NCBI GenBank assembly: GCA_025594325.1
Contig: JANHCV010000002.1
Location: 248,001 to 312,000, forward strand
Reading direction: 5' to 3'
Source of the DNA: Blastocladiella emersonii ATCC 22665
Lineage: Eukaryota; Fungi; Blastocladiomycota
Length of the DNA stretch: 64,000 nt
Part shown: piece after piece, positions 1,987 to 60,691 of the stretch
How the letters are laid out: the number at the start of each line of letters is the position of its first letter
Numbering within the stretch: the stretch's first letter is position 1
Notes under the pieces: generated by a model
Told to the model about the DNA's origin: nothing
Database searches by the model: none
Seen by the model: only the letters and a program-made list of their open reading frames with translations
Program-made: the position numbers and the translations under genes

Positions 1987-2030
1987 ATGGAACTGATGAA
2001 CAGCGGCCGCAACGTGTAACTTGCTGCAAT
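1987..2030 (+). promoter_or_regulatory. SR-family leader: uORF MELMNSGRNV* + TAACTTGCTGCAAT box
   Basis: ATG 1987, TAA 2017-2019, 11 nt before main ATG 2031. Confidence 0.7.
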
Positions 2031-4162
2031 ATGAGTGATTCTCGGGCGAAACCGCCGAGCAAGGTCTCGCTTCTCCCAAACGCGGAAATGGCCCGAGGTG
2101 ACGCCACGACTTCAGCCGCCGAGGGCCTGTTCCCGCCGAGCCGGTCGATTCGCTTGTGGTGGACGACTGACACGGAAGACAAGGCCGTCGACTACCGCCG
2201 GGAGCTTCTGAGGCAGTCCCCCGGCTCGTACGAAGCGCGTGTCTCGAGGACCCGGATTGTCCTCGACGGGCACTCGTCGGAGTGCCAGCTCGCCATTATC
2301 AGCTTTGTATGCGCAGTTTCGATTGTTCACCGCTCAGCAGTTCCGCTCACCGGCGATCGGCATCTGTAGCACGACATCCGCGACGCCCAGGCGGCCATGA
2401 AGTACTGGAACGGGCGCAAACAGTGGGGCGTCAAAATCGAGGCCCACTTCCTGATTCCGAAGACGCCCGCGCACGAGCGCACGCCGTGTTCTTCTCCAAA
2501 CAACGAGGGCTCGCTTCGCATCGACCTGCGCCCACAGGCAGCCATGCCCGCGGACTCGAGCCGAACTTGGTTGCGCGAGTTTTTAAGCAAGTTTGGCGGA
2601 ATTCGCTCGTTTGACGTGACCCAAGAGTCTCGCGAGTTCGTATCTCCCGTATCACTTCTGATCCAGACTTCCGCGGCTGACCGTTGCTCGCTTGTCCTGT
2701 AGCGGCTCCCTGGTCGCGTTTGTGGAATTTTACGACAACCGCGCCCGCCTCGAAGCTTGCGAAAAGCTGAACAATATGCTTTTCAGGGACTATACGATCC
2801 GCGCCGAGCTCGCGTGGGATGCGGCTTCAGTGTACGTCACTAATCCTTTTGATGCCCGGGCTTTGTACTGACGTCCATCTATCTTGATGTAGCGACATTG
2901 TGAAACGGATCATGAGCCGGTCCGTCGCCGTGGCACAGGGTCTTGTTCCGAAATGGGCCAGGTCGTTTGTCGTCTCAAGCCCGAGCGCGGGCGAGCAACC
3001 CGCGGGCAACGCTTCTCATGACCTGCATCAACCGGAAGGTCGCGGCTCCTTGAGCAGTCGCAGCGACGTGCGGCGTCCTAGCTCGCCTTCGCACTCCAGT
3101 CGTCGGTCGCGGTCCCGCTCTCGCTCTCATTCTCGCAGCTCTCAATCCCGCAGCTCTCATTCTCGTAGCCGTGATTTGCAGCGCCGCAGCCGCGATTCCG
3201 ACCGTACGATGAAATCATCGCGCGGTTCCCGCAGCCGCTCGCCGCGCAGTTCGCGCAGTTCGCGCATCTCGCGCGATCAGGCCAAGTCTTCCGACCAAAC
3301 CCGGCGTCGCAGCCGCTCGCGCGACACCCGCAGCAGCGAGCACGAGCCTCGCCGTCGATCGCAATCGCGAAGCAAACGCTTTTCGCGTTCTTCGCGGTCG
3401 GACGCTCGTTCTCGTTCCAGCTCCGGTTCTCGTTCTCGCCGCCGCGAATCCCCGCGTTCCCGTGCTAGCGAATCTACTGCCGAGGCCAATTCTGCTTCGT
3501 CCTCGATCGCTGTAAGCGACTCTATCCCGGCTCTCAACGCGCTTGCTGGTGCGCCCGCGCCCGCGGGTCCATCGTTCATTGTGCTGCCCGCGTCGGCTCT
3601 GGCGTCGCTCATCCAGTATCAACAACAGCCGCAGCAGCTCCAATATCCTCAGCTACAGCTCGAGCAGCTTCACCAACCGCAGCAGCTTTACCAGCCGCAC
3701 CTCCAGCTCCAGCAGCCGTTCCACCACCCCCAATTACAGCTTCAGCAGCAGCAGTCGAACGTCGCTCAGCCGCTCCAGCTGCAGTTTCACCAACCTCAAC
3801 CGCAGTTGCAGCTCCAGCAACAGCTTCTTCATCCGCAGCTACATCTTCAACAGCAGCAGCCGAACGTCGCCCAGGCGCTGCAGCTGCATGCGTCGCTCGC
3901 GGGCGCCAACAACTCGATGCTCCTCTCGTCCATGATAGCACAGGGCCTCGCTGGCGGCGGCGGCACTGGCGCGTATCTCGCGGGCAACCCGCTGCCCATG
4001 GTTCCCGCGGCCCCGCAGATGCAGTTGCAGATCCAGCCGCTCCAAGGGATGGGCATGGCGTCGCACCAGCTCCTGCCCTTGGTTCACGGCGGCAGCGCCA
4101 ACGGTGCAGGTGTTAGCGTTTCGGCGGCGAAACGTCTGAGCAAGTCGGCTTCGCGAAAGTAG
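2031..4162 (+). CDS. SR2: Mei2-like RRM1-RRM2 + RS + poly-Q protein (4 exons)
   Basis: FPPSRSIRLWW..LAIISF | HDIRDAQAAMKYWNG..HFLIPK..NNEGSLRIDLRP..FGGIRSF | GSLVAFVEFYD..ELAWD | DIVKRIMSRS..VPKWAR, then RS and Q-rich regions. The pattern PSR..DIRxA..HFxIP..N[EQ]G[ST]L..F[VI]EFYD matches the Mei2-like RRM pair as I recall it. Confidence 0.85.
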
Positions 4163-5159
4163 GATTGGAGCCGAGATAACCTCGAGTAAGGGGCTTTGTG
4201 ACGCCCGAGAGTATATATATATAAGTTTGTTAGTGATCGGCTTGAACTAGGTGCTCTGCTTGGTCAGTTGGTCGGGACGCGCATGAGCGACGCGTCGCGT
4301 TTCGCGTGGCGCACCACACACTTGAGCCGCGCGTGCATCGGGCACTTGTCCACCGCCCTCCCCTTCGCCGTGCGCGATGAAGCTGATGAGCGCGTAACTT
4401 GTGGCAAGCCGTCTACCGTGAGAGCGAGATCATGGATTGGGCGAGGTCACGCCCAGGTGCCACTGCTCCCAACGCGGAACGGGCGCCGTGAGCTCGATGA
4501 GCACGTTGGCGCGAGCAGCGCGCGCCGCCCATGCGAACGAAAGGCAAGTGTTAGCTCGAAACAGCCGCTGACCAAGTCAAGCTTTCGCGTGTTACCTCGC
4601 TGTGGTCCGCGATTCGCCGAAGCCGCTTCTGCTCGCGCCTTCGCAGTCAAAGCTCTTCCCATCCTCGTCTAGCTCGTGATCTCGGGACCGAGACTTTCGC
4701 CCGCTATTGCGCGACCACGACGTCCTCGGAATCGCTGAACGACAGCCGCCGTCGCCACCGGCCACCGCCAGAAGTGGCAGACCATGTACATGCCGGCCGC
4801 GTCAAGTTCGCTTGCGCGGTACTAATAGACTCGCATGCATCCGATCCTGTTCCCATTGCGAACTCGCTCGAGTGTCCGTTGCTGCAGCATGGGGTCGGCT
4901 CGTGCTCTTGAGCGCTGCTCTCAGGGCTTTCGTCGCGTCGTCCAAGCGCGACTCGTGCGCGCGTTGGGCCGCTCGATTTCCCTCGAGATCCTTCCTGACA
5001 TTGTTCCGGCATGAATTTGCATCTGAGCGACGCTTGCGGCAGACGCAGGGGCTTCGGCGAGTCGGAGGGGCGACGCGACGCGACGCGACGCGGCTGATGC
5101 GGTGAGTCAGACTTTCCACGGCCGCGCCCACCGGCGTTCTGCTCTCGGTCCGCCGCTTG

Positions 5160-5203
5160 ATGAAGCCAATGAACGACTGCCCTCGGGCTTAACTTGCTGC
5201 AAC
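5160..5203 (+). promoter_or_regulatory. SR-family leader: uORF MKPMNDCPRA* + box
   Basis: ATG 5160, TAA 5190-5192, main ATG 5204. Confidence 0.7.
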
Positions 5204-6916
5204 ATGGACCCGAACGAGGAACAGTCCCCGGAGCGGGCGCCGCTTCCCTCAAACTCGTCGCAGGCCGAAGCCGAACCCGAGATGCCGCCGAGCCGCTCGA
5301 TCCGCCTGTACTGGCCGGGCGACGCGCGAAGCCCCGTCAACTACCGCCGTGAGTTGGAGGATCAGTGCCCCAACGCGTACCAGGTCCACGTCTCGAGCGC
5401 ACTGATTCGGACTGGCCAAGACTCAGACGTCTACGAACGTCAGCTCGCGATCCTCGACTTTGTGCGGACTTTCTTGCTTGCATCCGACCGAGTGCGTACT
5501 CGAGCTTACCACTTACGGCGCGACTAGTATGACATCCGCGATGCCCAGGCGGCGCTCAAGCGCTGGAACGGGCGGACGGAATGGGGCGTGCGCGTTGAGG
5601 GCCACTACATGCTTCCTGACATGCCCGCGAAGGAGCGCACGCCATGCAAGAAGCCAGGCAACCAGGGCTCGCTCCGCATCGATGTGCGGCCGCGAGGACC
5701 CACCGCCGCGTGCCCTTGCCCCAATCTAATTCGTGACCACTTGAAAACGTTTGGCGAGCTGCGGTCGTTTGACGTGGTCCAGGAGCAGGGAAAGTACGTT
5801 GTTCTCGCACTCCACTCACTTCTCCCACTACTCGCGCTCGAGCTGACGATACTTTCGTGTTTTACCGCGCAGCGGGTCCCTGGTCGTGTTCGCCGAGTAC
5901 TTCAGCAAGCGCGAACGGCTGATTGCGCTCAAGGCGCTGGAGCGCGAACGGTCAGGGGACTATACGATCCACGTTCAACTTGCGTGGGATCAGTCCAGCG
6001 TGTACGCCACCTGCGTTTGCGACGCGCAAACACGCTGACTCCCGACGCTCGCCATTGTAGGGACATTGTGAGGCGGATTTTGGACCGTTCGGTCACCTTC
6101 TCGACCCCGGGACTGCTTCCTAAATGGGCCAGGGGACCGCCGTCGCACAGCGGCTCTACCGCGAGCGCCATGTCGCGCGGGAATACCGATCCGCAGCACC
6201 CTCGCACGCGTCTCCGCTCTCGTTCTCGCTCTCCTAGCCGTAGCCGTAGCCGGCACGGCTCGGCCCACGGCCACAACCGAGGGCGGGACGAGCGTAACCG
6301 CTCGCCACCTGGGCGATCCCGCCGCAACACCCCTTCGCCACGCCGTCCGCGCGACTCGCATGATCCTGTTCGGCACCGTCACAGCGCTCGCGATGACCGT
6401 GGCTCTAGCCGCGAACGCCATGAGCGCGTTTTGCCGCCGCGGACCCGCTCTCGCTCTCCTCGTCGCGACCCGCGCAGCGCTCGTACTCGCAACCCGACCC
6501 GCAAGGCCAAACCGGTTTCCGCGGTCGGAACTACCGAGGAAATAACGCTGCCGCCGAATCCTTTCCTTGCGCCGCCGCCAGCCACGCTGCTGGACATGCC
6601 CGTGTTTCCGTTTCCGCCGCAACAGCAGCAGCAGCAGCCCGATTTTGCGCAAGCGCTTCAGCTAGTCTCTCTCGCGGCCATCAACCCGTACTTCTTCTCG
6701 CTCGCGCAGGCGCAGGGTCTCGGCGCGCTCTTCCCTGCTCCCATGCCCACGCCTACCGCGGGTCAGCCGCTCCAGTTTCCGGGGATGCCGCTCATGCCGC
6801 CGCCGCCGATTTCGCTCCCGCCGGTCGTCACCGGCGGTGAACGCAACGTTGGGTCGACTGCGGCGGCGAGCGAGCACGGTGGCGCGCAGGTGATTCCGAA
6901 CTCCAGACGCGGGTGA
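5204..6916 (+). CDS. SR3: Mei2-like RRM-RRM-RS protein
   Basis: MDPNEEQSP..PPSRSIRLYW..LAILDF | YDIRDAQAA..NQGSLRIDVRP | GSLVVFAEYF..LAWDQSSV | DIVRRILDRS..LPKWAR; same three intron positions and phases as the other copies. Confidence 0.85.
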
Positions 6917-7164
6917 GTAAGGCGACGAAGTCGGGTGTGAGGAAGCAGGGTCCGTGTGAATGTAACAACAGTTCAGAGTCGCTCAGTGTCGATCAGTTGA
7001 TGGTCAGAGCGCAGCCGCGAGCCGGTTGAAACCACGTCAGCGAGTCGGCGGCCCAGACGAACGACGCGTCGCGTTTCAGGTCCGAGGAATAGGTGCTTCG
7101 GGTCGAGCTCGCATGTCATTGGTCTTCGATAGATGCTTGCTTTCGGAACAATAGCGTCGAGTGC

Positions 7165-7728: not shown

Positions 7729-7781
7729 ATGAAGTCGATGAAGCGAATGAACGCGAACCGCGATACATAACTTGCTGCAAC
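7729..7781 (+). promoter_or_regulatory. SR-family leader: uORF MKSMKRMNANRDT* + box
   Basis: In-frame ATGs at 7729, 7738 and 7747; TAA 7768-7770; main ATG 7782. Confidence 0.7.
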
Positions 7782-9619
7782 ATGGATAAATCCGAGTCGC
7801 AGCCTTCTCCTGCCTCGCTCCGCCCGAATGCTGAGCCAAAGCGAGGGTCGGGTTTGGGGGTGGCGACTGCCGCAACAGCTGACCCGCGGACTGCATTTCC
7901 TGCGAGCCGTGGGATCCGCTTGCGTTGGATGCCCAAATCAGACGATATATCCGATATCAGCCGCGAGCTTTGGAAGCTGTATCCTCGAGCTTACGCGATT
8001 TCCATGAAGAGCGCCACGGTCACCCGGGATGGGCGCTCTGATCAGCGGTGCCAGTTTGCAATCCTCAACTTTGTATGTTTCTGGGGCATCTACCTTTAAA
8101 CTTCATGTCCTTGTCCGGCTCAACGTGCTTATTTGTAACTCCGTGGGACACACTGTAGCATGATCTGCGCCACGCTCAGGCGGCCCTGGAGCAATGGCAC
8201 GGGCGCGAGCTGTACGGGAATCGCATCGAGGGCCATTACATGATTCCATGCGAGCCCGTGCAGCAACGCACGCCGTATAACTTCAAGAAGGGCCAGGGCT
8301 CGCTTCGCATCGAGCTGCGGCCGCGGAAAGCTGCGCCCGAGTACCCGAGCCATGGTCGGCTTCATCAACGCTTGTGCAGCTTTGGCGATTTGCGCTCGCT
8401 CGACGTGACCCAGGAGCGTGACGGGTATGTGGTTTTGAGCCCAAAGGCTCACACTGGAACGCGAGCTTACAACCACTCGTCACTTAGCGGCCCTCTTGTT
8501 GCCTTCGCCGAGTATTTCGATTCACGTTCTTGTCTTCGTGCCCGTGACGACTTGAACAAATCCAGGTTCGAGGGCTACACGCTCTACACTGAGCTCGCGT
8601 GGGACCAATCCTCGATGTCCGCCTCCGCCATTGCAACGGACATTTCTCTTGCTGACGCGCCGTCCACGTCTAGTGATATCGTGAAGCAGGTGCTGGACCG
8701 GTCGATTACTGTCGCCTCACACTTTCTACCTCCGTGGGCTAAGCTGGCCGACCCGACGCAACCTGCCGCCCGTGTACAGCGCCAGTCTCGCGGATCAGCA
8801 GGTCGCGCGAAGGACCAGCGCCGACTGCCTGCTTTGGGCGACCACAATCATTCACGGATTCCCCATCGCACTCGTTCACGCTCTCGCGCACGCTCCCGTT
8901 CTCATTCGCGAATCCGTCGTGCTGAACCTCGAGATCGCTCGCTCAGCTGTTCCCGCCGTCGGAGCAAATCGCCGCGACCCAGTCCTCGCAGTCAAACCAA
9001 CGATATTGATCAGGGTCGGCGTCGCGACCGTACGCGTGCCACCCGGCGGAGCTCGAGTCCGCCATCACGGCGCGCCTCTCGCTCGCCTCCGCCCTCTAGC
9101 TCTCGTTCTCGCCGCCGCACTCGAACTCTTTCGGGATCCTGGTCTCGTTCCCGCGCTCCTGAACTTGTTTCGCGGAGTTCGCGTGACGCCAAGCCAGACA
9201 GCGGTCCCCTTGTGCCTTCGATTCCGACAGCCAGCTTCATCCCAACGCTTGACATGCTCGCTTCCGCAGCACCGTCGGCCATGGAATCATCCTACATCGT
9301 TGTGCCCGCGGCTGCGCTGCCCTCTCTCATCCAGCAGTACAACCTCGCCCAGACCCTCCAGTTCCAGCAGGCCTCACTCGCGGCGGCGACCGCGAGTCCG
9401 ATGCTGCTCACGAATAACCTTGGCCTCGGTGGCGGCGGCAGTCTCGCACAGCTCAACCCCATGTACTCGATGGCTGCGGTCCCCGGTGCACCGTTGCAGC
9501 AGTTCCAGGGCACGATGCCGCTCCCCGTAATGCCAGCGCCGCCTCAGAGAGGGTTTGACCCAATTGCGATGCAGCAGCTTCGGTACATCTTTGGCAGTGC
9601 GGGAATGCCAGGGAAGTAG
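7782..9619 (+). CDS. SR4: Mei2-like RRM-RRM-RS protein
   Basis: FPASRGIRLRW..FAILNF | HDLRHAQAA..GQGSLRIELRP | GPLVAFAEYFD..LAWDQSS | DIVKQVLDRS..LPPWAK; introns 8425-8487 and 8617-8673. Confidence 0.85.
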
Positions 9620-11516: not shown

Positions 11517-11916
11517 ACCCATGCCTAGTTTCTAGTTTCGGGCACGAATAGAACCATTTTTGTACAATCAAAGCTGTTGATCTCTCACCGTTGTCACTCT
11601 TGCTTGCTCAGACATGCTTCTTTGGTCGCGGATCGGTACGACGCGCGTGATGGCTCGCGCGATCCCGTCGTTGTATGGCGGTAGCTAGGGCGCACGCCAA
11701 ACTTCCTCGATATCCAGCTGCCCGGATAGGGATCCGGTCAAGCCGGGTCTTGTGGGAGATGTTTGCGGCAGTCACTGAGGGTCGGGCGAGGGAGATGCAG
11801 GTCAGGAGGCAGAGCTGGGCGACGCGCTTGAGGACGCGACGCGACGCGGTTGGCGCGATGAGTCAGACATATCGCGGACGCTGCCTGTTGGCCGTTCGCT
11901 CCCGGCGCACCACCCC

Positions 11917-11960
11917 ATGAATCCAATGAACACTTACCCTCGAGCTTAACTTGCTGCAAC
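11917..11960 (+). promoter_or_regulatory. SR-family leader: uORF MNPMNTYPRA* + box
   Basis: ATG 11917, TAA 11947-11949, main ATG 11961. Confidence 0.7.
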
Positions 11961-13701
11961 ATGGACCCGAACGAGGAGCAATCGCCGGCAGAGGCCCCGC
12001 TTCCCTCGAACTCGTCGCAGGCCAACGTCGATGTACCCCCGAGCCGCTCGATCCGCCTGTATTGGCCGATGGATGCGCGCAGCACCGGCGACTACCAACG
12101 AGAGTTGGGGGATCTGAACCCCAAAGCGTACCAGGTGCATGTCTCGAGCGCGTTACTTTGCGTGAGTCCGGACACGCCCGCCCGCGATTTGTACCTCGCG
12201 ATTCTCGACTTTGTACGGACTGCCTTGCCTGCATTTGGATCGTCCGGCAGCTTATCACATACGGCGCGAGTAGTGCGATATCCGTGATGCCCAAGCGGCC
12301 TTCGAGCGCTGGAACGGGCGGGTGCAGTGGGGTGTGCTTGTCCAGGCCCACTACATGCTTCCACGCACGCCTGCGCAGGAGCGCACGCCCTGCATGCATC
12401 AAGGCAATCAGGCCTCACTCCGCATCGAGGTGCGCCCGCGGGCGGCCGCGTCCGCGTGCCCCGGCCGCGACTTGCTTCGCGGCCACCTGGAAACGTTTGG
12501 CGAGCTGTATTCGTTTGACGTGGTCCATGAATCGCAGGAGTAAGTCGCTTTCGCTCCTTCTCGACTCGGTTCCGCCCGGACTGACGAGCGTTTCGCGATC
12601 CACCGTGTAGCGGGTCCCTGATCGTGTTTGTCGAGTACTTCAAGAAGGGCCGCGCACAGATCGCACTCAATGCGCTGGAGCGCGAACGGTCGGAGGACTA
12701 TACACTCGACGTTGAGCTCGCATGGGATCAATCGAGCGTGTACGTAATCGCGCGGCTCTTGCACTACCGACGCGCGACGACGCTGACCCCTCGATTCTCC
12801 TCCCCGTAGGGACATCGCGAAGCGGATTTTGACCAACTCAGTCGATCTTGTGACCCCGGGGCTGTTCCTGAAATGGGCCAGGTCACCACAGTCGCGTCAC
12901 GGCGACGGTTTCGCAGACGTTGCTCCTAGCAGGAAGGCTGATTCGTGGCGCCCTCCCACGCAGACCCGTTCTTCTTCTCGCACACGGGTCCGCTCTCCTC
13001 CTCGCACGCAGGCTCGCTCTCCTTCTCGCACGCAGGCTCGCTCTCCTCCTCGCCATCGCAGCCAGAGCCAGAACGGCTCGGCGCACGGCCGCAACCGAGG
13101 ACGAGACGAGCGGGACCCACCGCGCGACCGCACGACCGAGCGATCTCGTCGGCGCGCAGATTCGCCACGCCGGTCGCGCACTTCGGATGACCAAGGTCGG
13201 CACCGCGACCGCGCTCGTGACAAGCGGAGCCGCAGCCGTGGTCGCGAGCGCCGTGACCAGCACCGATCGCGGTCCCGCTCACGCTCGCGCTCGCGTCGTC
13301 GCGAGCCGCGCAAGTCTCGTACCCGCGGCTCGGCCCCGGCCCGCGAGACCAAACCGGTTTCCGCTGCGGCACCTGCGGATGAGCCCGCGCCACCGCTCGC
13401 GCTGCCGCCGCCGATGCCTCCGTTCCCGCAGCAGCTCCCGCAGCCCGAATTTCTTCAAGCGTTCCAGCTGGCCTCGCTCGCGGTCGCCGCCCCGCTCCTC
13501 CTCTCGTTCATGCAGCAGGCCCAGACTCTCGCTTCGCTTCCGCCGCAGCTCTTCCCCAACCCTGTGCCGATCATGCCGCCGCCGCCGCCCAGTTTGCTCC
13601 CGCCGGCCGTCATCGGCGGTGCACGCAGCAACGCTGGGCCGAGTGCCACTGTCAACGAGCACAACGGTGCGCAGGAGGTGCCCAAGTTCGAGGAATTGTG
13701 A
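11961..13701 (+). CDS. SR5: Mei2-like RRM-RRM-RS protein (closest paralog of SR3)
   Basis: MDPNEEQSP start shared with SR3; same exon structure; NQASLRIEVRP, LIVFVEYF, LAWDQSS, DIAKRILTNS..LKWAR. Confidence 0.85.
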
Positions 13702-13942
13702 GTACAGCGGCGGAAGCCGGGTGTGTGGAAGCAGGGGATCGTGTGAATGTAACAGCGTCTCATCGGTGTCGTTGAGTGTCAAGCGGGTGATGGCCAAGTT
13801 CCGAGTATGGTGTTCGCCGTGAGAGCAACGCGACGCGACGCGACGCGTCGAGCGGGTGAGACGTGAGACATGGTGCCGCCACACGCGTTCACTTTCTTGG
13901 ACGCGCGTTCGCCTCGCTCTCCTTCTCCGCGCACCCTTGCCC

Positions 13943-13987
13943 ATGAAGCTGATGAACGCTGATTGCGACGGTTTACTTGCTGCAAAT
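13943..13987 (+). promoter_or_regulatory. SR-family leader with stop lost (TAA to TTA), fused in frame to SR6
   Basis: ATG AAG CTG ATG AAC .. GGT TTA CTT GCT GCA AAT ATG; 12-nt gap makes MKLMNADCDGLLAAN an N-terminal extension. Confidence 0.65.
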
Positions 13988-15886
13988 ATGGACCGATTCG
14001 AGGATAACTTGCTGGCCGAGTCCAACGACACGGTCCCGATGCCTTTGGACGCGAAGCAGGCGCTGGGAGTCAGCCCCCCGCCTCACCCAACCTCGGTGTT
14101 CCCGCCGAGCCGCTCAGTCCGCTTCCACTGGGTGCCCAAGGTCGGGGATACTTGCGATCATCGGGATGAGCTAGTCGAGCTGTACCCTAAAGCTTTCAGC
14201 GTGATGGCAAAGAGCGCCTTCATCCACACGGACGGACGCGACACACTGTGCCGCTATCTCATCCTCGACTTTGTACGACTCAGAGATAACTCATCTGGGC
14301 GAGAAGCAACTTACTCACCAGCACCCGTGTAGTACGATATTCGCGATGCTCAAGCGGCAATCGAGCTGCTGCACGGGCACGAGCGGTGGGCCACTCGCAT
14401 CATGGGTCACTTTATGATTCCTCGCGAGCCAGTGCGAGAGCGTGTCCCACATCACTTCCCGACGGGCGAGGGCTCGATTCGGCTTGTTCTTCAGCCGCGA
14501 ACGGCGTCGCCCGGTTCGCCGGGCCACGATCAGCTCCACGCACTTGTGAGCAAGTTTGGCGAGCTGCGCTCGTTCCACCTGAACAAGGACTCGAAAGGGC
14601 ACGTTTGTTGAAACAGTTTGCTGTCGTCGATGCAGCTGACCTTTCCTCTTTTTCTTTTAGAGACTTTTTGCATGTGTTCGCCGAGTTTTATGATTCTCGC
14701 TCGAGGGTTCGTGCGTGCAGTGCGTTGGATGGAACTCGATTCGAGGGCTACATGCTTCGGGCCGCGCTAGCATGGGATCAGGCTTCGATGTACGTCGCCC
14801 GCAAGCGACAGAGCGGTGAGCAACTTCTGACACTTTTCTTGCTGTAGCGACATTGTCAAACGGCTGCTCGACCGGTCCATCAAAGTCCCGCACGGCTTCC
14901 TTCCGCGATGGGCTCATCCGGTAGACAAGCCTGCTTCTTGGTCTTCAAACCGCAGCCAGCGGCGCTCGCTTGAAGCGGGGAACCGGGTCGATGCCCGGCA
15001 GCTCTTCTTGGTCTCGGACCTGCGAACGCGATCGTGGTCGCGCTCCCCTTCGCCTAGTATGGGCACTCAAAATGGCAAGCATCGTGGCTCGGGCCGCTCG
15101 CGCAACCGTTCTCCACCCCGGCGTGCTGCGAAGGAGGCCGATTCATCCGAAAGGTCATGGGATCGGGATCGCGATCGCGACCATGGCAGCCGTCGGAGCC
15201 CAAGTCGTGATCGCGACCGTGGCCGTGACCGTGACCGCAGTCGGCAGCACTTTCACTCGCGGGAAAGCTCTTGGGCGCGGACCGCGTCTCGCTCACGCGC
15301 GTATTCACGCTCGCGTCGTGACTCTCATTCGCGCACCAAGACTCGATCGCGCTCTGACGCTGCTTCTCGGACTGGCTCTCGTTCGTCTACTTCTTCTCGC
15401 AAGCGCGGATCCCGTCGCTCAAGCAACAAAGAAGCTAACACCAACTCTCAATCGACCGGCTTCGCCGCTCCTCCCGCAAGCGGGCTCCTGCCGACGCTGA
15501 GCGCGCTCGTTACGGCGCCTGTTGCCGCGAGCCAGTCGTACGTTGTGGTGCCTGCAGCGATGCTCTCCGCTGTAGTCAATCAACAGCAGCAGCAACAACA
15601 GCAACAGCAAGCCCTCGCCAATCTGCTCTCAATGCAGCAGATGCCGCTCGTAACCAATGCTAACACGAGGTTTCTCCCGTCAACGCATGGAATCGGCAGT
15701 GGTATTGCTTTCCTGAATCCCGTTTACATGGCGGGCGGAGCCAACCCGGTGCCGCTTCTGGTGCAGCAGCCGCGCGCCCACACCATGCCGCTATCGATCT
15801 CAGGCGTCAACTTCGGGCAAGCAGCGTTGCAACAGCAACAACAGTGGTTTGGCGATGCTCTCAGCAACTCTGAGCAGCCACGGTGA
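13988..15886 (+). CDS. SR6: Mei2-like RRM-RRM-RS protein
   Basis: FPPSRSVRFHW..LILDF | YDIRDAQAA..GEGSIRLVLQP | (GC donor, intron 14599-14660) DFLHVFAEFYD..LAWDQAS | DIVKRLLDRS..LPRWAH, RS, poly-Q. Confidence 0.8.
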
Positions 15887-16275
15887 TCGCATCTCGTTGT
15901 GGTGCATATCCTTGCCCGAGAGTGTTGTCCTCGTTGAGGATGTAGTCAATAAGAGATCAGTTCCTGCCTGCTCTAATTCTTGCGCATCAGCGCAAACTGG
16001 TTGAATCTCACCGTTACGATGGCTGTCGTGGTTTGAGCTGAGCGAGTGGTCCAGCTCTCGCGACCTGGATTGAGGTCCTTGGCGCACGATTGTCTTAAAA
16101 TTTTTGCAAACCTTCTTGAGCAAGGGGCGCGGCGGGGGCAACGACGCGATGACGCGGACAAGGTCGCGTTGGTCACATCACGCCACCTCGTCCGCCGCGG
16201 CTTCCCACCGCTCCCTCCCCGGCGGAACACAACGAAGCGAAGGAAGATTGAACACACTCTCTAACTCGATGCAAC

Positions 16276-18145
16276 ATGGATGAAATGCAGCCCGTATCGT
16301 CTCCCGGGGATCACCTCGAGGCCCCGCTTCCTTCGCCCTCGGCTCCCGCGCCAGGGCCGACGCAGACGGCCACTGATCTTTTCCCTCCGAGCCGTTCGAT
16401 TCGATTGCACTGGATGGTGGAGCCGGGAGACACCGCCAATCGCCAGGCCGTCGTGCAGACTTTGACTCCAAGCGCTTACTTGGTCAGGGTCAAGACGTCC
16501 AGTGCCAAACTGGACGGCCGGAGGCACCTTCTCCGCTCTGCTCTGCTTGATTTTGTGCGCATAAACCATGCCGGTCGTGGCGGCGGCGCACAATGTCCTC
16601 ACTCATCCGGTTGTATGTAGGCCGATCTCCGCGATGCCCAGGCCGCGCTTGTGTACTGGCAGGGCCGGGAGCTCTGGGGTACGCGCGTCGAGGCCCATTT
16701 CATGATCCCGAGCGAGCCCGTGCAGTCTCGGACGCCGTACAGGAATGCGCGGGGCGACGCGTCGCTGCGCATCGAGCTGCATCGGCGAAACGGTCCGCCC
16801 GTGGAGAACCCGCAGGAGCTTGACGAGCTGTGGACTCTGTTGGCCCGCTTTGGCGATCTACGCTCGTTGGACCCGTTTCAAGAGCTACCGGGGTGCGTCG
16901 TTTCGTGCCGCCTTCAGCAGCGAGCTCCACAATGACTGAAAAACAACGTATTTGAATCTGAAGCGGTGCTTTGCTTACATACGCCGAGTACTTCAGCAAT
17001 GCCAATCGCTTCACCGCGTCGCAGGCGCTGCACCTCTCGCAGTTCAAGGACTACGAGGTCTACGCCGAGCCCGCGTGGGATCAGTCGTCGCTGTGCGTTT
17101 GTCTCGCCCGCCCTGGTAATGATTTCCGACTGACGTACACATCCCACTGCATAGTGACATTGTGAAGCAGGTGCTCGACCGATCCATCACCATTCCGCGC
17201 CACCTTCTTCCGGTCTGGGCGAGATCGCTGGACAACGCTTATGGTCCGCCCACGCCATCATTGAAACCCGCTCACAAGGCTCCCGCGCGCCGAAGCGACT
17301 TGCCGAAACCGATAGCGCGCGCTCGCTCCCGCAGCCGCGACGCGACGCGCCGTCGCCAGCGCGAGTCCCCATCTCGCGGACGCGATTTGCGTCGGGATGT
17401 GAGCTCGCGCCGCAGGCCTTCGCGCAGCCGCTCTCGTTCCCGCGCTCGCCATTGGAGTCGTTCGCCGCGCCGTTCCCGGCACCAGAGCAAATCGCGCGAC
17501 CGCAGCGGACGCCGTGAGCGAAACGTCAAGGATCGCTCCACTTTGCGCTCGCCTTCACGCTCGCGATCCCGTTCGCGGTCTCGTTCGCGGCGCCATCGCG
17601 ACCGACGCCGTTCCGCATCATCTTCGTCGCGCTCTAGTTCTATCTTGCGGTCCCGCTCGCCGTCGCGCTCAACCCGCCGCAGCCGCGAAAATGACGGCGA
17701 CCGTGACCCGATCCTTCCCGAAGCGCCGTCGGCGAGTAACGTCGCGCCGCTGACGCCCGCGGTCGGTCCGGGATACGTCGTCGTGCCCATGGCGGCGCTC
17801 TTCCAGCCCCAGTTCGCGGCCCTTGCGTCGCCGCAGCCCACCGTCGCGTCGCTCGCCGACAATCCGATGCTGCTGCTGTCGTCGATGTTGGGCCAGGGCC
17901 AGGGTCTCGGGACGATGCTACCGAGCCCTGCGTATACGCCGACTGCAACGGGAGCCGCAGCTGCGCCGTTCCCGATGTCGCTGCCGTTCGCACTCTCGCT
18001 CGGTCTTCCTCCGCTCCAGTCGCCGATCCCGAGTGGCGCGGCTCGTCCGAGCGAGACTCCTCCAGTCACGCCAGCGCCAACCAAGAAGCCATGGACCCGC
18101 ACCAAGGCCTCGGCCAAGAAGACGTCGGCCAAGTCGTCCGAGTGA
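16276..18145 (+). CDS. SR7: Mei2-like RRM-RRM-RS protein
   Basis: FPPSRSIRLHW..ALLDF | ADLRDAQAA..GDASLRIELH | ALLTYAEYF..PAWDQSS | DIVKQVLDRS..LPVWAR. The leader keeps the TAACTCGATGCAAC box but has lost the uATG. Confidence 0.85.
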
Positions 18146-20816: not shown

Positions 20817-20851
20817 ATGAACTCTGGTCGCGACATTTAACTTGCTGCAAT
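20817..20851 (+). promoter_or_regulatory. SR-family leader: uORF MNSGRDI* + box
   Basis: ATG 20817, TAA 20838-20840, main ATG 20852. Confidence 0.7.
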
Positions 20852-22572
20852 ATGGACAGTATCAGGCCGCAGTCGCCTCGCAATGGTGCTCGCCGCCCCA
20901 ACGCGGACAAGGCGAATGGAGCCACCAGCATCTCGTCAGCGGCGCCGTGCTACTTCCCGCCCAACCGCTCAATCCGGCTACACTGGATCCCGGTCCCAGG
21001 CGATTCCAACTCTCATCAATCCTACATCGCAGACCAGAGCCCAAACGCTTACGCAATCAAGGTCGCAATTACCAGGTTCCAGGTCGACAGGCAGCCCGTG
21101 ACAGGCCGGCTCGCCATTCTCAACTTTGTACGCCGCCCATCGTTGGCTGAGCGACAGATCCATGCTCGCTGAATCACTCATCTTAATGCGTCCGCATGCG
21201 TAGGACGACCTGCGCGACGCGCAAGCCGCACGCGAGTACTGGAACGGTCGGGCGTGCTGGGGCACGCGCGTCGAGGCGCAGTTCCTGATTCCGACCGAGC
21301 CCGTGCGGCAGCGCACGCCGTACGAGCACCGGCGCAGCGAGGGCTCGCTGCGCATTGAGCTGCGGCCGTCGGCCAGTTCGCCCGAACCGCCGAGCGACAG
21401 CCAGCTGCGCGAGCTGCTCGCCGGATTTGGGGAGCTCCGCTCGCTTGACCGCCTCCAGGAGCAGAGCGGGTGCGTTCGTGGTTTGCGTGGAGCTTGAGAA
21501 CGCGGCTGACGCTTCGCCCCATGTAGCGGCGCGTTCTTCACGTTTGTCGAGTACTTCAACCATCGGGCTCGGCTTCGTGCGTACGATGCCCTCCTCAAGG
21601 CTCAGTTCGGTGACTACACGCTGCGCACTGACCTCGCGTGGGACAAGTCGTCCATGTACGCTGCTCATCCATCGCGGAGCTCTTCCTCTCCCTCTCTGAC
21701 TCTCGGATTTCCACTGTAGAAAGATTGTGCGGCAGCTACTCAACCGATCGATTGTCGTGCCGAAGTGCGTGCTTCCGACTTGGGCAAAAGTGCATGGCGT
21801 TCATTACCGCCCTGACCGTGACAACGGCGTCGCGCGCCTTGCTGGGTCACATGCGCATGCGGCGCGCTCGCGATCCCGCTCACGCGGCCGTGACGCGCGC
21901 TATCATGGCAGTCGGCCTCGCTCCCGCTCACGCAGCCCTTCGCGTCATCGCTATCGCGGCCGCAGCCGCAGTTGTAGCCGACCGCCGCCCCGCTTGCGCG
22001 ATCGAAGCAGCTCCCGCGACAACAACCGACGCGCCCGTCGGTACCGCAGGTCTGCTTCTCCTTCTCGCTCGCGCGCCCGCCCTCGGGATCGCTCTCACTC
22101 TCGGTCGCGATCTCGGTCGCGTCCACGCCGCTCTCGTCGACGCACTCCATCCTCATCTCCGTACCGCTCACGCTCGCCTCCGCCTCACCATAGCCACGGC
22201 TCGTTCTGGACTAGCGTGCCGCCACCGCCGCTGCCAATGACGCCCATGGGCGCGCCGTACATGGCGCACCCGATGGCCGCACTCGCGCAGTACCAGCAGC
22301 AGCAGTACTTGGCCGCGATGCAGGCCGCGTCATCGCTTTCCGCCGCCCCGAACCCGATGTTGCTCTCGCCCGTCGTGACGCAAGGAATCGGCGGCGCGGG
22401 CGGTCCGTACCCGTACCCGAGCCCCATGTACACGCCGACGGCAGCCGCGGGCCCCTTCGAGATGCCGTCGCAGCCGTACTTGATGATGTCGCCGATGCCA
22501 AACAGCGGCGGCGGGACGAACGCGCTTCAGCTGTACGCCGCGGGTTTGGGTCCGCCTGGTCTGCCAAAGTAG
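20852..22572 (+). CDS. SR8: Mei2-like RRM-RRM-RS protein
   Basis: FPPNRSIRLHW..LAILNF | DDLRDAQAA..SEGSLRIELRP | AFFTFVEYFN..LAWDKSS | KIVRQLLNRS..LPTWAK. Confidence 0.85.
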
Positions 22573-22745: not shown

Positions 22746-22789
22746 ATGGAACTCATGAACGGCAGCCGCGCAACCTAACCTGCTGCAAC
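22746..22789 (+). promoter_or_regulatory. SR-family leader: uORF MELMNGSRAT* + box
   Basis: ATG 22746, TAA 22776-22778, main ATG 22790. Confidence 0.7.
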
Positions 22790-25044: not shown

Positions 25045-25180
25045 GGTTCCCGTGAGGCCGGAGGTGTGGCGTTCACAATTTTGACCTGCGCGTTCTCCGA
25101 AACGGCAGCCCCCTCCCCGCTCGTCGCTCGCTTCGGCCAACGCTCTCGCTCCCGCCCTACTGCGCGGACTGCTCTCCAGC

Positions 25181-26882: not shown

Positions 26883-26983
26883 GGCTCTGCTGATGCAAGC
26901 CACTCATGTTGAACGCTTATTCGCTCGAGGCTGCCCGCCCTCCGCCCTTTCCCTCACCATCGTAAGACGTAGCGAATGAACAA

Positions 26984-36168: not shown

Positions 36169-36183
36169 ATGTAACTTGATGCA
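36169..36183 (+). promoter_or_regulatory. Start-stop uORF + TAACTTGATGCA box before delta-tubulin
   Basis: ATG TAA CTTGATGCA ATG; resembles the SR-family box. Confidence 0.35.
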
Positions 36184-56610: not shown

Positions 56611-56686
56611 TTCCCTGCGAGGCGACGTTTCGCTGCATAGCCTGAATCCGTGTATTGTCAGCGCAAGCATCTCCTCCCCAGCACTC

Positions 56687-58499
56687 TCATGTCTGTTTAG
56701 GAGGCGATGGGCACCCGGAACCAGCAGCAGGCTGATGCTGCATCATCTGATACATCTCGTGCGAGTTACGGCCGCCGCCAGCGTGCGGCGTCAAGTTCTG
56801 GAACTGCGGGTTCATGCCCGCGGCCGCGGCCGCGGCCATCGCGTGCATATGGCTCGCGTACGCGGCGCCGCCGCCACCGGATTTGAGCGCGAAGAGCATC
56901 GGGTTTGCAGCTGCTGCGGCTGCGAAAGACGACGCCTGTTGCATATGGAACGCGTGGGCGATCGCGGGCAGGGAGGACACGGGCACAGTCACGAACGAGG
57001 CACCCACACCCATGGCCGCGGACGGGTTGGGCGTTGGGGCTGGACAAATGTCCGCCGCCGTCGAAAATGAACGACGGTCGCGACTCGAGTAAGCGTCGCG
57101 AGAGTAACGGGAGCCACGGCTATGAGAGCGCGAACGGGAAAGTGACCGCGAACGAGGGCGTGAGCGAGAGCGATAAGTGCGCCGTGTCCGCCGCCTGGCT
57201 TCGCGTGCGCGGCTCACGCTTCGCCGCCCACGGCGACTACGATCGCGACTATGACCACGAGAGTCGAGTCGAGCGGGCGAACGCCTGCGTCGGCGAGAAC
57301 GCCTGCGCGAGCGTCGTGAATCGTTGCGCTGATGGCGCGGGACAGTGCGGTTGCGTGAACGTGAACGAGAACGAGAGCGCGACCGTCGATTTGAGCGAGA
57401 AGCGGTCGACTCGAACGGGGACCTCGAATGGCGACCACGGTTCGCGGGCTTTCGCGTCGCCGGCTTCGAAGTCGGCATGGTGGCAATCGTCCGACCCCAC
57501 TTGGGAAGAAAGCGCGGGCTGACCGTGACAGATCGGTTCAAAATCTGCCTCACAATCTCACTACACAAGAGTCGATGCGTCAACGAAAGCCCATCACTGG
57601 GGCAGGCGGAACGTACATTGACAATTTGTCCCACGCAAGCTCAACGTGAAGCGCGTAGTCTTCAAACCGAGTCCCGTACAAACCACGGAGCGCAAGGAGT
57701 CGACATTGGGTGTCAAAGTACTGGAAAAACACGACCAGCGGGTCGCTGGAAGTAACCGAGGGTCAGTTAACCTGAGTCTCCGCCGTTCGTCCAGTGGCAT
57801 TGAGAAACGTACCTACTCGACTCTCGAATGAGCTCAAACGAGCGCACCTCGCCAAACTCGGTCAGGAGATCGCGAGGCAGATCGCGGCTCGGGTCCGCGG
57901 GCTCGGCCGTTCGCGGGCGCAGCTCGATGCGCAGCGAGCCTTCGCACTCTTGGTGTGCTGGTACGGGGTGCGATGCTCAACGGGGATCCCGGGAATCATG
58001 AAGTGCGCGTAGACGCGAACCGCCAACGCTCACGCCCGCTCCACTGCGCAAGTGCTGCAATAGAGTCGCGGATGTCGTGCTACGAGAGTAATCGGGTCGA
58101 TGAGGGAAGGGCGGGGCCGGGAACAACACGAGAACGTACAAAGTCAAGTAGTGCGACATGACGTTGCATGCGACGCCCGCTGTAAATGACATAATCTGAG
58201 CTCCGTGTGGTGACGCTGAAGGCGAGAGGATGCAGCTCAGCCAGCTCCTTGCGGCGGTCCGGCATCCTTCCAGGCTCGGTGACCCACATCAGTCGAATCG
58301 TGCGGCTTGGAGGAAAAATGGCCGTGTTCTCCGCGTCTGCGTCTGATGCCGAGGTTACAGCTGATATGCACGTCTCCGGCGCTGCTGGTACAGCCGTCAT
58401 TGCCGCAAGTTCGGGCACGTTCGCCCGCTCCGAGTTTGGAAGAAGCGGAGTCGTGCGGCGCGCATCGTCGGCTGGCATTGATGTGTTCGGATGGTCCAT
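56687..58499 (-). pseudogene. SR10: SR-family gene with two frameshifts in exon 2
   Basis: Exon 2 HDIRDSIAALAQWSGRERW slips by 1 nt at ~58021 (TGA follows) and again at ~57944 before EGSLRIELRP; other exons intact. Confidence 0.7.
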
Positions 58500-58543
58500 G
58501 TTGCAGCAAGTCAAACCTTGCCGCAAGTGTTCATTGGCTTCAT
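58500..58543 (-). promoter_or_regulatory. SR-family leader: uORF MKPMNTCGKV* (TGA stop) + box
   Basis: ATG 58543, TGA 58513-58511, main ATG 58499. Confidence 0.7.
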
Positions 58544-58901
58544 CGACGGGGTGCAGAGAGAGAGGGCGGCGAGGCCCGACTCGTCACGCCCAACGCGTCG
58601 CTCACGAGTGGCGTGGCTCACGTGACTAACGCCACACAAAAACCCTGCAAGAAACGCAAGGGCCGCTTCCTGATAGTTTTGGCTATGACCGTGGTCCAAA
58701 ATAGGTTGAATGACGCGTCATTCGATTCTCGAACGTGCCAAACACACTGCGCGTCGGTTGATGGCCATCGTGATGGTCGCAGCTGTACGTGGGCCATGTC
58801 CGAGCTTACCTCGTTAGTTCGGTCGTGGTTTCGCTTTGTTCGTGCGTCATAGACATAAACTCATACGCTGTATATTCATACATCTTTCTCCGCGCTCCCT
58901 C

Positions 58902-60656
58902 TTAGTTGGGTGGGGCTGGAAAGGTCGGGTGCTGCATCAACATCACGCCGCCAAGGCCGCTGAACCCGCCCCGACTCGTGTACTGGAACAGCTGTGGTGT
59001 CGTGTTCACTCCCTGAAGCTGAATTGGTGGAGCTGCAGCGGCCGTGTAAAAGGGATTCGTCGCGACAAACTGAGGAACAAGCGGACCCAGGCCGCCACCG
59101 AAGCCCTGAGCCACCGCGGGCGCGTGAAGAATGGGGTTATTCGTAGCCGCGAGCGATGACTGCGGTTGAAGCATTTGGGCAAGATTTTGCTGCTGGGTAA
59201 ACGAAGAAAGCGCTGTCGCAGGAAGGATCATAAACGAAGGAGCAGCTGTCGTTGCTAGCACGCTTGGAGGAACCAAGGGTGCTGAAGCAGCATTCATGTC
59301 GCGAGCTGGTTCATGTCCGCGAGTGCGCCGAGAATCGCGACGACGAGAGCGCGAGCGTGGCTGAGGGCTTCGATGAGAGCGCGAGCGGGACCGCGGGCGC
59401 GAAGTGCGCGAACGACGAGTGTTTGATCGCGAGCGCGAGCGGCGGCGTTCGCGGGTGCCCCCATGTGGATGTGGTTGAGTACGATCGCGAGGACGGCTGC
59501 GGCTCCGCGCCGCTCGCGACGTATGGTTGCGATGGCGATCACGCGAGCGGCTGCGCGAGGGGTCGCGAGATGCGCTCTCTCGGCCCGCGTCACGGCCTCG
59601 GATCGAAGCATCCTGGTCGCGATCCCGAGCGTCAAGGCCCTTCGAATTGGAGCGAGTGCGCGGAGTTATGCTGGCCGGGCGCGCTGCAGCGGACCGGACA
59701 AGCGAGCTGGCCCATTTCGGCAACACGCCTGAAGGCAAGTTGATCGGCCTGTTTAACAGCTTCTTGACAATGTCGCTACACCGAGTCCGTGGTTAAGTGC
59801 AGGCACATGGCGAGCTCATGGGCGGGAAAAACGTGCATTGATGTCTGATCCCACGCAAACTCGACGTGGAGCCTGAAATCTCCAAGCTCGCTCAAGTTCA
59901 GAGCCCTGCATGCCCTGAGTCGATCCCGGTCGTCAAAGAATTCAACAAAAATGGCCAAGTATCCGCTACACGGCCAGAATTCAGACGAGTGTTAGCTAAG
60001 TTTTGGGTTGTAGGGCTGAGAGTGTGACGGAAACGGACCTGCTCGACGTTTGAAAGCGGCCGAGCGAGCGTAACGGGCCAAACTCCAAGAGCCGCTCGCG
60101 CAGCCGATCGTAACCGAGCGGCGTTGGCAATCTTTTCCACGGGCGTAACTCGATCAGTAGCGAGCCCTCGCCCGTGTGGTGGTAGTGCGGCGTGCGGTGT
60201 TGCACAGGCTCTCCAGGGATCATGTAGTATCCTTGGATACGACTGCCCCACTGCTCCCGCCCGTGCCAATGTTCCAGCGCCGCTTGCGCGTCGCGTATGT
60301 CGTTCTACAGGGATCCATATTCGGATGAGACAAAACATCGCCTGGTTTGCGGCGGAAGAGCATGGACGCACAAATTCAAGGATTGCGAGCTGGTACAGTT
60401 GCGACCGGCCGTCAAGTCGGAGAAGCGCACTGTTGACTTTGACTGAGTACGCCTCGCGACACTGTTGCTGCAGCTCAAGCCGGTAATCGGTGACATCCTC
60501 CGAGCGTTGCTTCCAGTACAAGCGAATCCTCCGCATCGGAGGGAAGCCAAATGGCGATAGGGGCGCGTCGCCGCCCCCGCTCGCTGACGATGGAGTCGGA
60601 TCGAGCGGGGCCTGTCGCTCAGTCGCTGACGATGATTTCGGCCTCGGTCCGTCCAT
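58902..60656 (-). CDS. SR11: Mei2-like RRM-RRM-RS protein
   Basis: FPPMRRIRLYW..LAILEF | NDIRDAQAA..GEGSLLIELRP | YLAIFVEFFD..FAWDQTS | (GC donor) DIVKKLLNR..LPKWAS. Confidence 0.85.
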
Positions 60657-60691
60657 TTTGCAGCAAGTTAATCGCGTTGAGGTTAATCCAT
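60657..60691 (-). promoter_or_regulatory. SR-family leader: uORF MD* plus the conserved downstream TAA box
   Basis: ATG GAT TAA CCT CAA CGC GAT TAA CTTGCTGCAAA ATG. Confidence 0.6.

Follow-up and report, generated by a model that had tools for sequence, protein, structure and literature searches.

A conserved two-module 5' leader of SR-like genes in Blastocladiella: a candidate upstream open reading frame that ends 11 nt before the main start codon

The question raised by this locus is whether the conserved sequence directly upstream of the SR-like genes of Blastocladiella is read by the ribosome, as a short upstream open reading frame (uORF), or by the transcription machinery. The window, i.e. 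the whole stretch of 64,000 nt that was analysed, contains ten SR-like genes with a visible 5' end, eight of which carry the full two-part leader. The setting is an early-diverging fungus, and the control of stored mRNAs at the level of translation is a classic subject there, unsettled in its molecular detail. In the literature searched, nothing was found on stored mRNA, uORFs or transcription start sites of Blastocladiella.

The SR-like proteins consist of a probable RRM and an RS tail. The RS repeats are directly visible, and the RRMs are split by introns. The RRM_1 profile reaches 19.8 bits (E 7.5e-4; cut-off 20.7) on 8159-8614 and an E-value of 0.2 on 5528-5793. Searches of Pfam and PDB with single exons were mostly blank, the domains being split by introns. 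A word search with the exon-2 ORF of SR3, and with its RRM part alone, gave no match in the collections searched. The FYDIRDA and NQGSL motifs of the SR-like proteins presumably recall Mei2.

Architecture and conservation of the SR leader

In 5' to 3' direction the SR leader reads ATGAAGCnAATGAAC, 15 variable nt, T(A/G)A, the box CTTGCTGCAAY and the main ATG (Table 1). The box pattern CYTGCTGCAAH followed by ATG has eight exact matches within the window. With up to two mismatches there are 11 matches compared to 1.4 expected, a number reached in 0 of 100 shuffles. Scanning metagenomes with the full composite pattern gave two matches in unrelated sequence without leader-like context, which are judged to be chance matches.

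Table 1. Leaders of the SR-like genes and occurrences of their modules at other genes (window coordinates)
Feature	Span	Strand	Upstream ATGs	Stop	Box	Main ATG	Remarks
SR2	1987..2033	+	1987, 1996	TAA 2017-2019	2020-2030	2031	
SR3	5160..5206	+	5160, 5169	TAA 5190-5192	5193-5203	5204	
SR4	7729..7784	+	7729, 7738, 7747	TAA 7768-7770	7771-7781	7782	uATGs in frame, 9 nt apart
SR5	11917..11963	+	11917, 11926	TAA 11947-11949	11950-11960	11961	
SR6 (variant)	13943..13990	+	13943, 13952	changed to TTA 13973-13975	13976-13987	13988	one extra A in box; uORF in frame with main ATG
SR7 (variant)	16231..16278	+	lost (ACG 16232, AGG 16241)	TAA 16262-16264	CTCGATGCAAC	16276	spacing retained; two box changes give a new out-of-frame ATG
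SR8	20817..20854	+	20817 (uATG2)	TAA 20838-20840	20841-20851	20852	uATG1 position is GCG
SR9	22746..22792	+	22746, 22755	TAA 22776-22778	22779-22789 (CCTGCTGCAAC)	22790	
SR10	58497..58543	-	58543, 58534	TGA 58513-58511	58510-58500	58499	
SR11	60654..60701	-	60691 (uATG2)	TAA 60670-60668	60667-60657	60656	uATG1 position is ACG; uATG2 gives just ATG-GAT-TAA; conserved TAA and box retained
Decayed extra SR 5' end	4377..4434	+			CTTGTGGCAAG (degraded)	4432	uORF 12 nt shorter (MKLMSA-stop); broken frame after ATG
P family, motif 1	25180..25195	+					start of ORF 25181-26662; ATGAAGCAAATGAAA forms the first five codons
P family, motif 1	26966..26986	+	26977			26984	before ORF 26984-28618; frame ATGAACAAATGA from ATG 26977 ends in a TGA that overlaps the main ATG
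P family, motif 1	62752..62767	-				62757	start of third P-family gene
Tubulin, box	36169..36186	+					ATG-TAA-CTTGATGCA-ATG; start-stop and box directly before tubulin-domain ORF 36184-37056

The mean pairwise nucleotide identity of the ten copies is 0.72 for motif 1, 0.87 for the stop and 0.89 for the box. The 15-nt spacer is at background (0.34). The flanks are saturated by divergence, with values of 0.33 for positions -100..-60 and 0.38 for positions +7..+60 of the coding sequence. The blocks are thus conserved while the exon-1 proteins are only 29-43% identical (one pair 68%), which points to purifying selection on the leader. Gene conversion as the source of the conservation is ruled out, as the spacer between the blocks is not homogenised. 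The analysis adds that the leader consists of two separable modules, the conserved blocks; the distance between them does not vary, and the spacer is free of constraint.

The second upstream ATG (uATG2) is present in nine of the ten copies. The T of the first (uATG1) is the least conserved base of the motif 1 block (7/10 copies). A stop is found at the fixed site in nine copies, as TAA in eight and TGA in one; in the tenth the uORF is fused in frame. The spacing of 15 nt is also unchanged in SR7, which has no upstream ATG, and in SR11, where the uORF stops after two codons. The single nucleotide inserted into the SR6 box is the sole indel among the intact SR copies.

These data bear out the descriptive part of an earlier note on this DNA. 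It had claimed a uORF in eight of the ten copies, and all of its upstream ATGs (1987, 5160, 7729/7738, 11917, 20817, 22746, 58543(-), 60691(-)) are found where it placed them. The proposed gap of 11 nt between stop and main ATG is seen in all eight canonical copies, and the change from TAA to TGA in SR10 and the shorter uORFs of SR8 and SR11 are likewise reproduced. The five variable codons were said to differ freely without indels; the spacer indeed has constant length at 34% identity. The leader had also been described as better conserved than the adjacent coding sequence, which holds for the blocks (0.72-0.89 versus 0.38). Aligning the ten leaders of the window, a check that the note suggested for all genomic copies, returned conserved blocks and a spacer of fixed length at background identity.

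Several other identities of the leader were considered and rejected. A structured RNA element is ruled out: RNAalifold predicts 0 pairs for the SR leaders, and z-scores of single-sequence folds range from -2.0 to +1.6. The likeness of TAAC to a CTRAC branch site suggested a branch point or the 3' end of an intron; both are ruled out by the lack of a conserved AG downstream and by the introns of the SR family, which end in TAG. The same two points rule out a splice acceptor in the 5' UTR at the GAAG past the CT-rich tract. An N-terminal extension in the main frame was discarded; this frame is open upstream in most copies, as expected at 65% GC, without an in-frame ATG. CCAAT occurs in only three of ten copies, which dismisses an NF-Y box. 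A conserved uORF peptide was looked for and not seen; with the spacer codons at 34% nucleotide identity, the peptides differ freely.

The modules at unrelated genes

Both blocks are present individually at genes unrelated to the SR-like family within the same 64-kb window: motif 1 at three P genes, the box at one tubulin gene and the core of the box at two protease-like genes. The P genes form a family of their own that is interleaved with the SR-like genes. An exact look-up of a P-family ORF matched no record. Motif 1, (C/G)ATGAAGCnAATGAAC, corresponds to the start-codon region of the P genes. Its position weight matrix (PWM) gives 16.5-19.0 bits at each of the three P-family starts that are visible, and no more than 12.4 in the background. 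The first 120 codons of the third P gene contain no Met other than the ATG at 62757, and the SNGK codons of two P paralogues differ at synonymous sites only. The second ATG of motif 1 thus appears from the sequence to be the main start in the P genes. Transcription of these genes would then begin upstream of it. By analogy, motif 1 probably lies within the SR mRNAs, too.

The box preceding the tubulin-domain ORF scores 21.7 bits with the second PWM; apart from two family-derived sites, the background does not exceed 8.7 bits. In the duplicate genes for secreted protease-like proteins at 10110 and 28842, a single ATG is usable, and the exact 10-nt core ACTTGCTGCA lies 9 nt downstream of it.

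A proposed translated uORF and its rivals

At a probability of about 0.5, we propose that the SR leaders are transcribed two-module 5' leaders in which a uORF sets the output of the family and the main frame is reached mainly by leaky scanning. Module 1, the start-codon motif, and module 2, T(A/G)A-CTTGCTGCAAY abutting the main AUG, would be held 15 nt apart. The uORF that they jointly make up comprises 7 codons, or 10 when counted from the first uATG, and its peptide is not conserved. The AUGs of the uORF are in a weak context (C at -3, A at +4) and the main AUG is in a strong one (A at -3, G at +4). The stop is always followed by C and lies 11 nt upstream of the main AUG. The leaders are predicted to be unstructured, which is compatible with scanning. 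A fraction of the scanning ribosomes would initiate on the uORF. The 11-nt gap is probably too short for efficient reinitiation, and the mRNA stretch occupied by a ribosome terminating at the stop would overlap the one needed by a ribosome that assembles on the main AUG. For these two reasons the main ORF would be reached chiefly via leaky scanning. The uORF would determine how much protein the whole family makes, and could modulate this amount. The additional conserved bases are probably recognition sequences, either of initiation, termination or reinitiation factors or of the transcription machinery; the last may coexist with a uORF.

Besides the analogy with the P genes, three observations lend indirect support to a translated uORF. 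The stop is preserved in SR10 by the change from TAA to TGA. The loss of the stop in SR6 is accompanied by a 1-nt insertion, resulting in an in-frame fusion. The tubulin gene has the arrangement ATG-TAA-box-ATG. Furthermore, the dead copy at 4377 carries a degraded leader, which is counted for the uORF and for selection.

Several observations count against it, the low conservation of the T of uATG1 among them. The conserved sequence (about 30 nt and an exact 15-nt spacing) exceeds the approximately 6 fixed nt that a uORF needs. Indels of 3n, which a uORF would tolerate, are absent. SR11 and SR7 retain TAA, box and spacing without using them as the end of a uORF. ATG, stop and a spacing that is a multiple of three are no test of the uORF, because these features prompted the hypothesis. 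The absence of a stop from the spacer in eight of nine copies equals the chance expectation estimated from base composition. Neither codon bias nor stop avoidance is informative for the five codons of the spacer, whose GC3 is 23/40.

The same observations can be read as a bipartite core-promoter DNA element composed of an initiator-type block and a second block, with about 31 bp between their centres. ATG and TAA would then be mere letters of the motif, and the uATGs would be untranscribed or the uORF an unselected passenger. An invariant-length, freely varying spacer between conserved blocks is what protein-DNA geometry leads one to expect, and the spacing and TAA persist in SR7 and SR11, where they do not serve a uORF. 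A CT-rich tract immediately precedes the blocks, and ACGCG and TGAGTCA sites lie about 50-100 nt upstream of them. Each block recurs singly at unrelated 5' ends, motif 1 at those of P genes and the box at that of the tubulin gene, and the third 9-nt ATGAAG repeat unit of SR4 resembles arrays of binding sites. However, the motif 1 ATG as the main start of the P genes would be transcribed there and could not be a -30 element, and at 10110 and 28842 ACTTGCTGCA is downstream of the only usable ATG, which argues against a transcription start inside the box at these genes. A pure DNA motif also does not predict the stop-preserving change in SR10, the frame-restoring insertion in SR6 or the ATG before TAA at the tubulin gene. 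To our knowledge, no described fungal core-promoter motif matches the blocks. We regard this explanation as possible but somewhat unlikely, and it may coexist with a uORF. The translational reading of the earlier note thus fits the sequence and gains support from the P genes, SR10, SR6 and the tubulin gene, but the core-promoter alternative, which the note itself had raised, is still a strong rival. The switch for stored mRNAs of zoospores that the note suggested is speculative.

A more specific form of the uORF proposal regards the box T(A/G)AC-TTGCTGCAAY as a Blastocladiella cassette of termination and start. Such a cassette would couple a short frame to a main AUG 11 nt away by hand-over or blockade of ribosomes. 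It would be modular, with the SR-like family and a tubulin as users, and stage-specific, e.g. for mRNAs stored in zoospores. This extension is unlikely as it stands.

Alternatively, a trans-acting protein may bind the blocks as RNA sites within the 5' UTR, be it one of the SR-like RRM proteins in autoregulation or a stage-specific repressor, with no role for the uORF. What is conserved is the sequence itself, within a probably transcribed region, the genes encode probable RRM proteins with RS tails, and a protein on the box, which adjoins the AUG, would block initiation. On the other hand, there is neither conserved secondary structure nor covariation, these blocks are also found on unrelated genes and the stop-preserving and frame-restoring variants are left unexplained, so that RNA sites are quite improbable. 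It is highly improbable that the uORF is a relic, i.e. a P-type promoter and start captured before the ancestral SR gene, with the old frame closed by a stop and the block inherited: motif 1 is indeed common to the interleaved P family, but identities of 0.33-0.38 for flanks and spacer versus 0.72-0.89 for the blocks, in genes whose proteins are only about 35-40% identical, point to selection rather than inheritance, and the leader of the single dead copy has decayed.

Should the uORF be translated, one translational throttle with an unusually rigid geometry would be common to a whole lineage-specific family of RNA-binding proteins, and the leaders would provide a compact natural system for the effects of termination beside a start codon on initiation. 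If they belong to the core promoter instead, the blocks would count among the first start-site motifs defined for Blastocladiomycota. On either reading, the two PWMs describe a concrete, testable pair of motifs.

Comparison with known systems

Fixed-spacing core promoters are Inr+DPE in animals, INR+FPR in oomycetes and TISU in mammals. These likewise consist of two short blocks at a rigid distance at gene 5' ends. The TISU element includes the start codon, and CAACATGGAC resembles SAASATGGCGGC. The SR blocks differ from all three in consensus, and motif 1 probably lies inside the mRNA in the P genes.

The arginine attenuator peptide of CPA1/arg-2 is a fungal uORF of the conserved-peptide type. 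It is likewise conserved across homologues, whereas the SR spacer peptide is not conserved. Start-stop uORFs, exemplified by plant NIP5;1, are matched by the tubulin copy at 36169, which reads ATG-TAA followed by the box. The SR uORFs comprise 7-10 codons (2 in SR11), and a start-stop is found at the tubulin leader only.

In systems of the GCN4 type a short uORF likewise depends on the surrounding sequence, which makes conservation of the flanks expected. For reinitiation the intercistronic distance must not fall below a minimum, and the outcome depends on cis features that surround the uORF (PMC5972666). DENR-MCT-1 has been proposed to remove this requirement for a minimum distance (PMC5972666). 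The several uORFs and the long spacer of the GCN4 type are not seen in the SR leaders, which have one uORF instead of four and a gap of 11 nt, far below what reinitiation needs for re-acquisition of the eIF2 ternary complex.

In leaders of the CHOP/GADD34 type, a single inhibitory uORF is bypassed by leaky scanning. There, as in the SR leaders, a uAUG in weak context precedes a main AUG in strong context, and the output reflects the share of ribosomes that skip the uAUG, as it would in the SR genes. The SR arrangement differs in that its candidate uORF has a fixed length and a stop that belongs to a conserved 14-nt box and is separated from the main AUG by 11 nt; it is shared by a whole paralogous family.

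The SR-like genes and their two-block leader

The window has a GC content of 64.6% and contains eleven copies of the SR-like family (tblastn), ten of them with a visible 5' end. Three core exons are kept in all ten. Exon 1 terminates with ...AILDF and exon 2 opens with (Y/H)D(I/L)RDAQAA; the intron after exon 1 has roughly 65–90 nt and the donor GT(A/G)(C/T)G. Further 3', a second split RRM-like unit is followed by an RS-rich tail. "SR-like" is a fair label because split RRM-like units and an RS-rich tail are present. The Pfam profile RRM_1 matches an SR gene with 19.8 bits (E 7.5e-4), just under the cut-off of 20.7, because introns cut the domains. Some of its motifs may point to a Mei2-like affinity of the family. 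The protein identity of exon 1 to SR3 is 29–43% across the copies, except for SR5 (68%).

The leader consists of motif 1 with two upstream start codons (uATG1 and uATG2), a 15-nt spacer, the stop T(A/G)A, the box CTTGCTGCAAY and the main ATG; uATG2 is situated 35 nt ahead of the main ATG. The earlier note had described a uORF ending 11 nt before the main ATG in nearly every copy, and its uORF coordinates are all correct. The recurrent pattern is real: CYTGCTGCAAH directly followed by ATG has eight exact matches in the window, each in an SR copy, and with up to two mismatches 11 matches compared with 1.4 expected; 11 was reached in none of 100 shuffles. The ten leaders align without gaps over a stretch that begins 56 nt before the main ATG and ends 15 nt past the first base of that codon; the sole exception is one A inserted in SR6.

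Mean pairwise nucleotide identity over the ten copies is 0.33 at positions -100 to -60, 0.38 in the CT-rich tract, 0.72 in motif 1, (C/G)ATGAAGCnAATGAAC, 0.34 in the 15-nt spacer, 0.87 in the stop, 0.89 in the box and 1.0 in the main ATG. At CDS positions +7 to +60 it is 0.38, which bears out the earlier statement that the leader (0.72–0.89 in the blocks) is more conserved than the coding sequence just after it. Judged by these values, motif 1 and the stop with the box are two islands under purifying selection, held at a rigid distance in surroundings that are saturated by divergence.

Natural variants differ in which parts of the leader they retain. SR10 carries TGA rather than TAA, as had been noticed before. 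SR8 is devoid of uATG1 and SR4 has an extra (third) in-frame ATGAAG unit 9 nt farther upstream. In SR11 uATG2 is kept and reads ATG-GAT-TAA; the regular TAA further on, with its box and spacing, is still in place. SR7 is without either uATG (the positions read ACG and AGG) and retains TAA and spacing; two changes in its box generate a new out-of-frame ATG. In SR6, TTA replaces TAA and the box contains one additional A, with no other indel among the intact boxes. The additional A brings the uORF into the frame of the main ORF, so that 15 residues are added to the N-terminus. One further SR-type 5' end is decayed: its uORF is shortened by 12 nt, its box is degraded and the frame after it is broken. 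It lies between SR2 and SR3 in a remnant that also shows ACGCG sites and a CT-rich tract; after its ATG, stops follow in all frames.

Features of the window related to the leader blocks and their host genes
Feature	Position	Strand	Remark
Motif 1 at P-family start	25180-25195	+	PWM
Motif 1 at P-family start	26966-26986	+	PWM
Motif 1 at P-family start	62752-62767	-	PWM
ATG-TAA-CTTGATGCA-ATG	36169-36186	+	start-stop and SR-type box; adjoins tubulin-domain ORF
Decayed SR-type 5' end	4377-4434	+	
Remnant containing the decayed 5' end	4290-5100	+	ATG at 4432
Box-like site in SR10 CDS	58398-58412	-	14.3 bits
HExxH gene, first copy	10110-11516	+	468 aa
HExxH gene, second copy	28842-30248	+	468 aa
ACGCG run (example)	5060-5110		
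ACGCG run (example)	11830-11870		
ACGCG run (example)	13880-13910		

Leader blocks at unrelated genes

Position weight matrices (PWMs) derived from the eight canonical leaders (SR2–SR5 and SR8–SR11) separate true sites cleanly from background. The motif 1 matrix recognises the start of each of the three visible P genes (25181, 26984 and, on the minus strand, 62757) with 16.5–19.0 bits; the background maximum is 12.4 bits. The P family is unrelated to SR and interleaved with it. P-family ORFs (493 aa and 544 aa, no significant match in Pfam) start within ATGAAGCnAATGAA, the same motif as the SR uORF start, and their main start codon is the second ATG of motif 1. There is no further Met among the first 120 codons of P62757. 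The SNGK codons after the start differ between P26984 and P62757 only by synonymous changes, which marks these codons as translated sequence. A deletion of 1 nt in P26984 converts the first ATG into a 3-codon uORF (ATGAACAAATGA) with its TGA overlapping the main ATG.

The SR and P families have a common promoter layout. ACGCG runs (GACGCGACGCG...), often accompanied by TGAGTCA or CACGTG, are located ~90–150 nt 5' of every main ATG, and next comes the CT-rich tract, which ends at motif 1.

The box matrix scores 21.7 bits at 36172 and at most 8.7 bits elsewhere, save for two family-derived sites, one in the decayed leader (4395, 10.6 bits) and one in the SR10 CDS. The ORF after the box at 36172 contains a Tubulin domain (PF00091, E 1.6e-20). 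Its first 66 residues do not match the tubulin profile, and the register of the profile sets the protein start at the ATG abutting the box. The site in the SR10 CDS, where an in-frame ATG comes after the box-like GAACTTGCGGCA, belongs to a segment absent from the other copies and may be the trace of a leader duplicated internally.

The window contains ten instances of the exact box core ACTTGCTGCA, all of them in sense orientation and none more than 20 nt from a start codon. In the two HExxH genes the core makes up codons 4–6, and the only ATG within 400 nt sits before it. The two HExxH copies are 97% identical and encode secreted-looking proteins with a signal-peptide-like start, an HExxH motif and a hydrophobic C-terminus; their upstream similarity ends ~26 nt before the ATG. 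The leader is modular, with motif 1 shared with P genes and the box shared with the tubulin gene; of the new leads, this modularity is the most useful.

Two possible readings: a translated uORF or a core-promoter element

From the sequence, the two-block leader is best read as a translated uORF of fixed geometry within two start-associated motifs, with a probability of about one half. The interpretation given in the earlier note is supported in part. Four observations that did not prompt this hypothesis fit a selected uORF, each modestly (about a three-fold likelihood ratio): the stop-preserving change in SR10, the coupled stop loss and frame restoration in SR6, the ATG right before the TAA of the tubulin box and the decayed leader on a dead copy. 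A spacer free of in-frame stops, observed in 8 of 9 copies, matches the chance value of ~0.88 per copy that follows from base composition. Conservation is weak at the T of uATG1 (7/10), and GC3 of the variable uORF codons is unremarkable (23/40). No conservation of the uORF peptide and no RNA structure was found across the SR leaders. The uORF of the earlier note does not account for the conserved length of ~30 nt and the invariant 15-nt spacer; no 3n spacer indel occurs in the ten SR leaders, though a uORF would tolerate it. Nor does it explain why SR11 and SR7 keep TAA, box and spacing.

The main rival, already named in the earlier note, is a core-promoter element in which the uORF is incidental. 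Two blocks ~31 bp apart (centre to centre) with a free spacer have this look, and the persistence of TAA and spacing in SR7 and SR11 would need no uORF. However, a transcription start inside the box conflicts with the two HExxH genes because their only ATG precedes the core, provided that the core is a genuine instance there. Overall, this explanation is less probable than the uORF, though a serious rival. Both readings can be compatible, as DNA signals around the transcription start could still put a translated uORF in the mRNA. Gene conversion as the source of leader conservation is rejected, since the spacer would be homogenised too.

Transcription of uATG2 in SR genes is favoured by likeness to the P genes. 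Motif 1 holds the working P start codon and therefore P transcription starts upstream of that ATG. In the P genes the start would have to lie within or just past the CT-rich tract, which precedes motif 1 in SR genes too. If uATG2 is within SR mRNAs, it shares the context of a working P start and therefore should be used.

In a metagenome scan the full composite pattern matched only twice (L001:744-781 and L002:1590-1627). Both matches, in unrelated sequence and with no leader-like surroundings, are judged to be chance.

Possible route to the main ORF

Positions -3 and +4, which count under the standard context rules, are C and A around the SR uAUGs, and A and G around the main AUG. The base after the uORF stop is always C. 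The footprint of a ribosome usually covers ~28–30 nt, and the stretches of mRNA needed for termination at the uORF stop and for a complex assembled on the main AUG would overlap. Furthermore, a ribosome that has translated a short uORF needs more than 11 nt to re-acquire a ternary complex (PMC5972666). With this overlap and gap, ribosomes initiating at the uORF would largely be lost to the main ORF, or would block it. Leaky scanning would supply the main ORF, and the output of the whole family would respond to any shift in the stringency of start-codon choice or in the dwell time at termination. A link of the uORF to mRNAs stored in zoospores is speculation; a literature search for Blastocladiella uORFs, transcription start sites and stored mRNA found nothing. 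For very short uORFs, reinitiation of the DENR-MCT-1 type has been proposed to waive the distance rule (PMC5972666). This would be an alternative route to the main ORF and is especially plausible for the start-stop of the tubulin gene.
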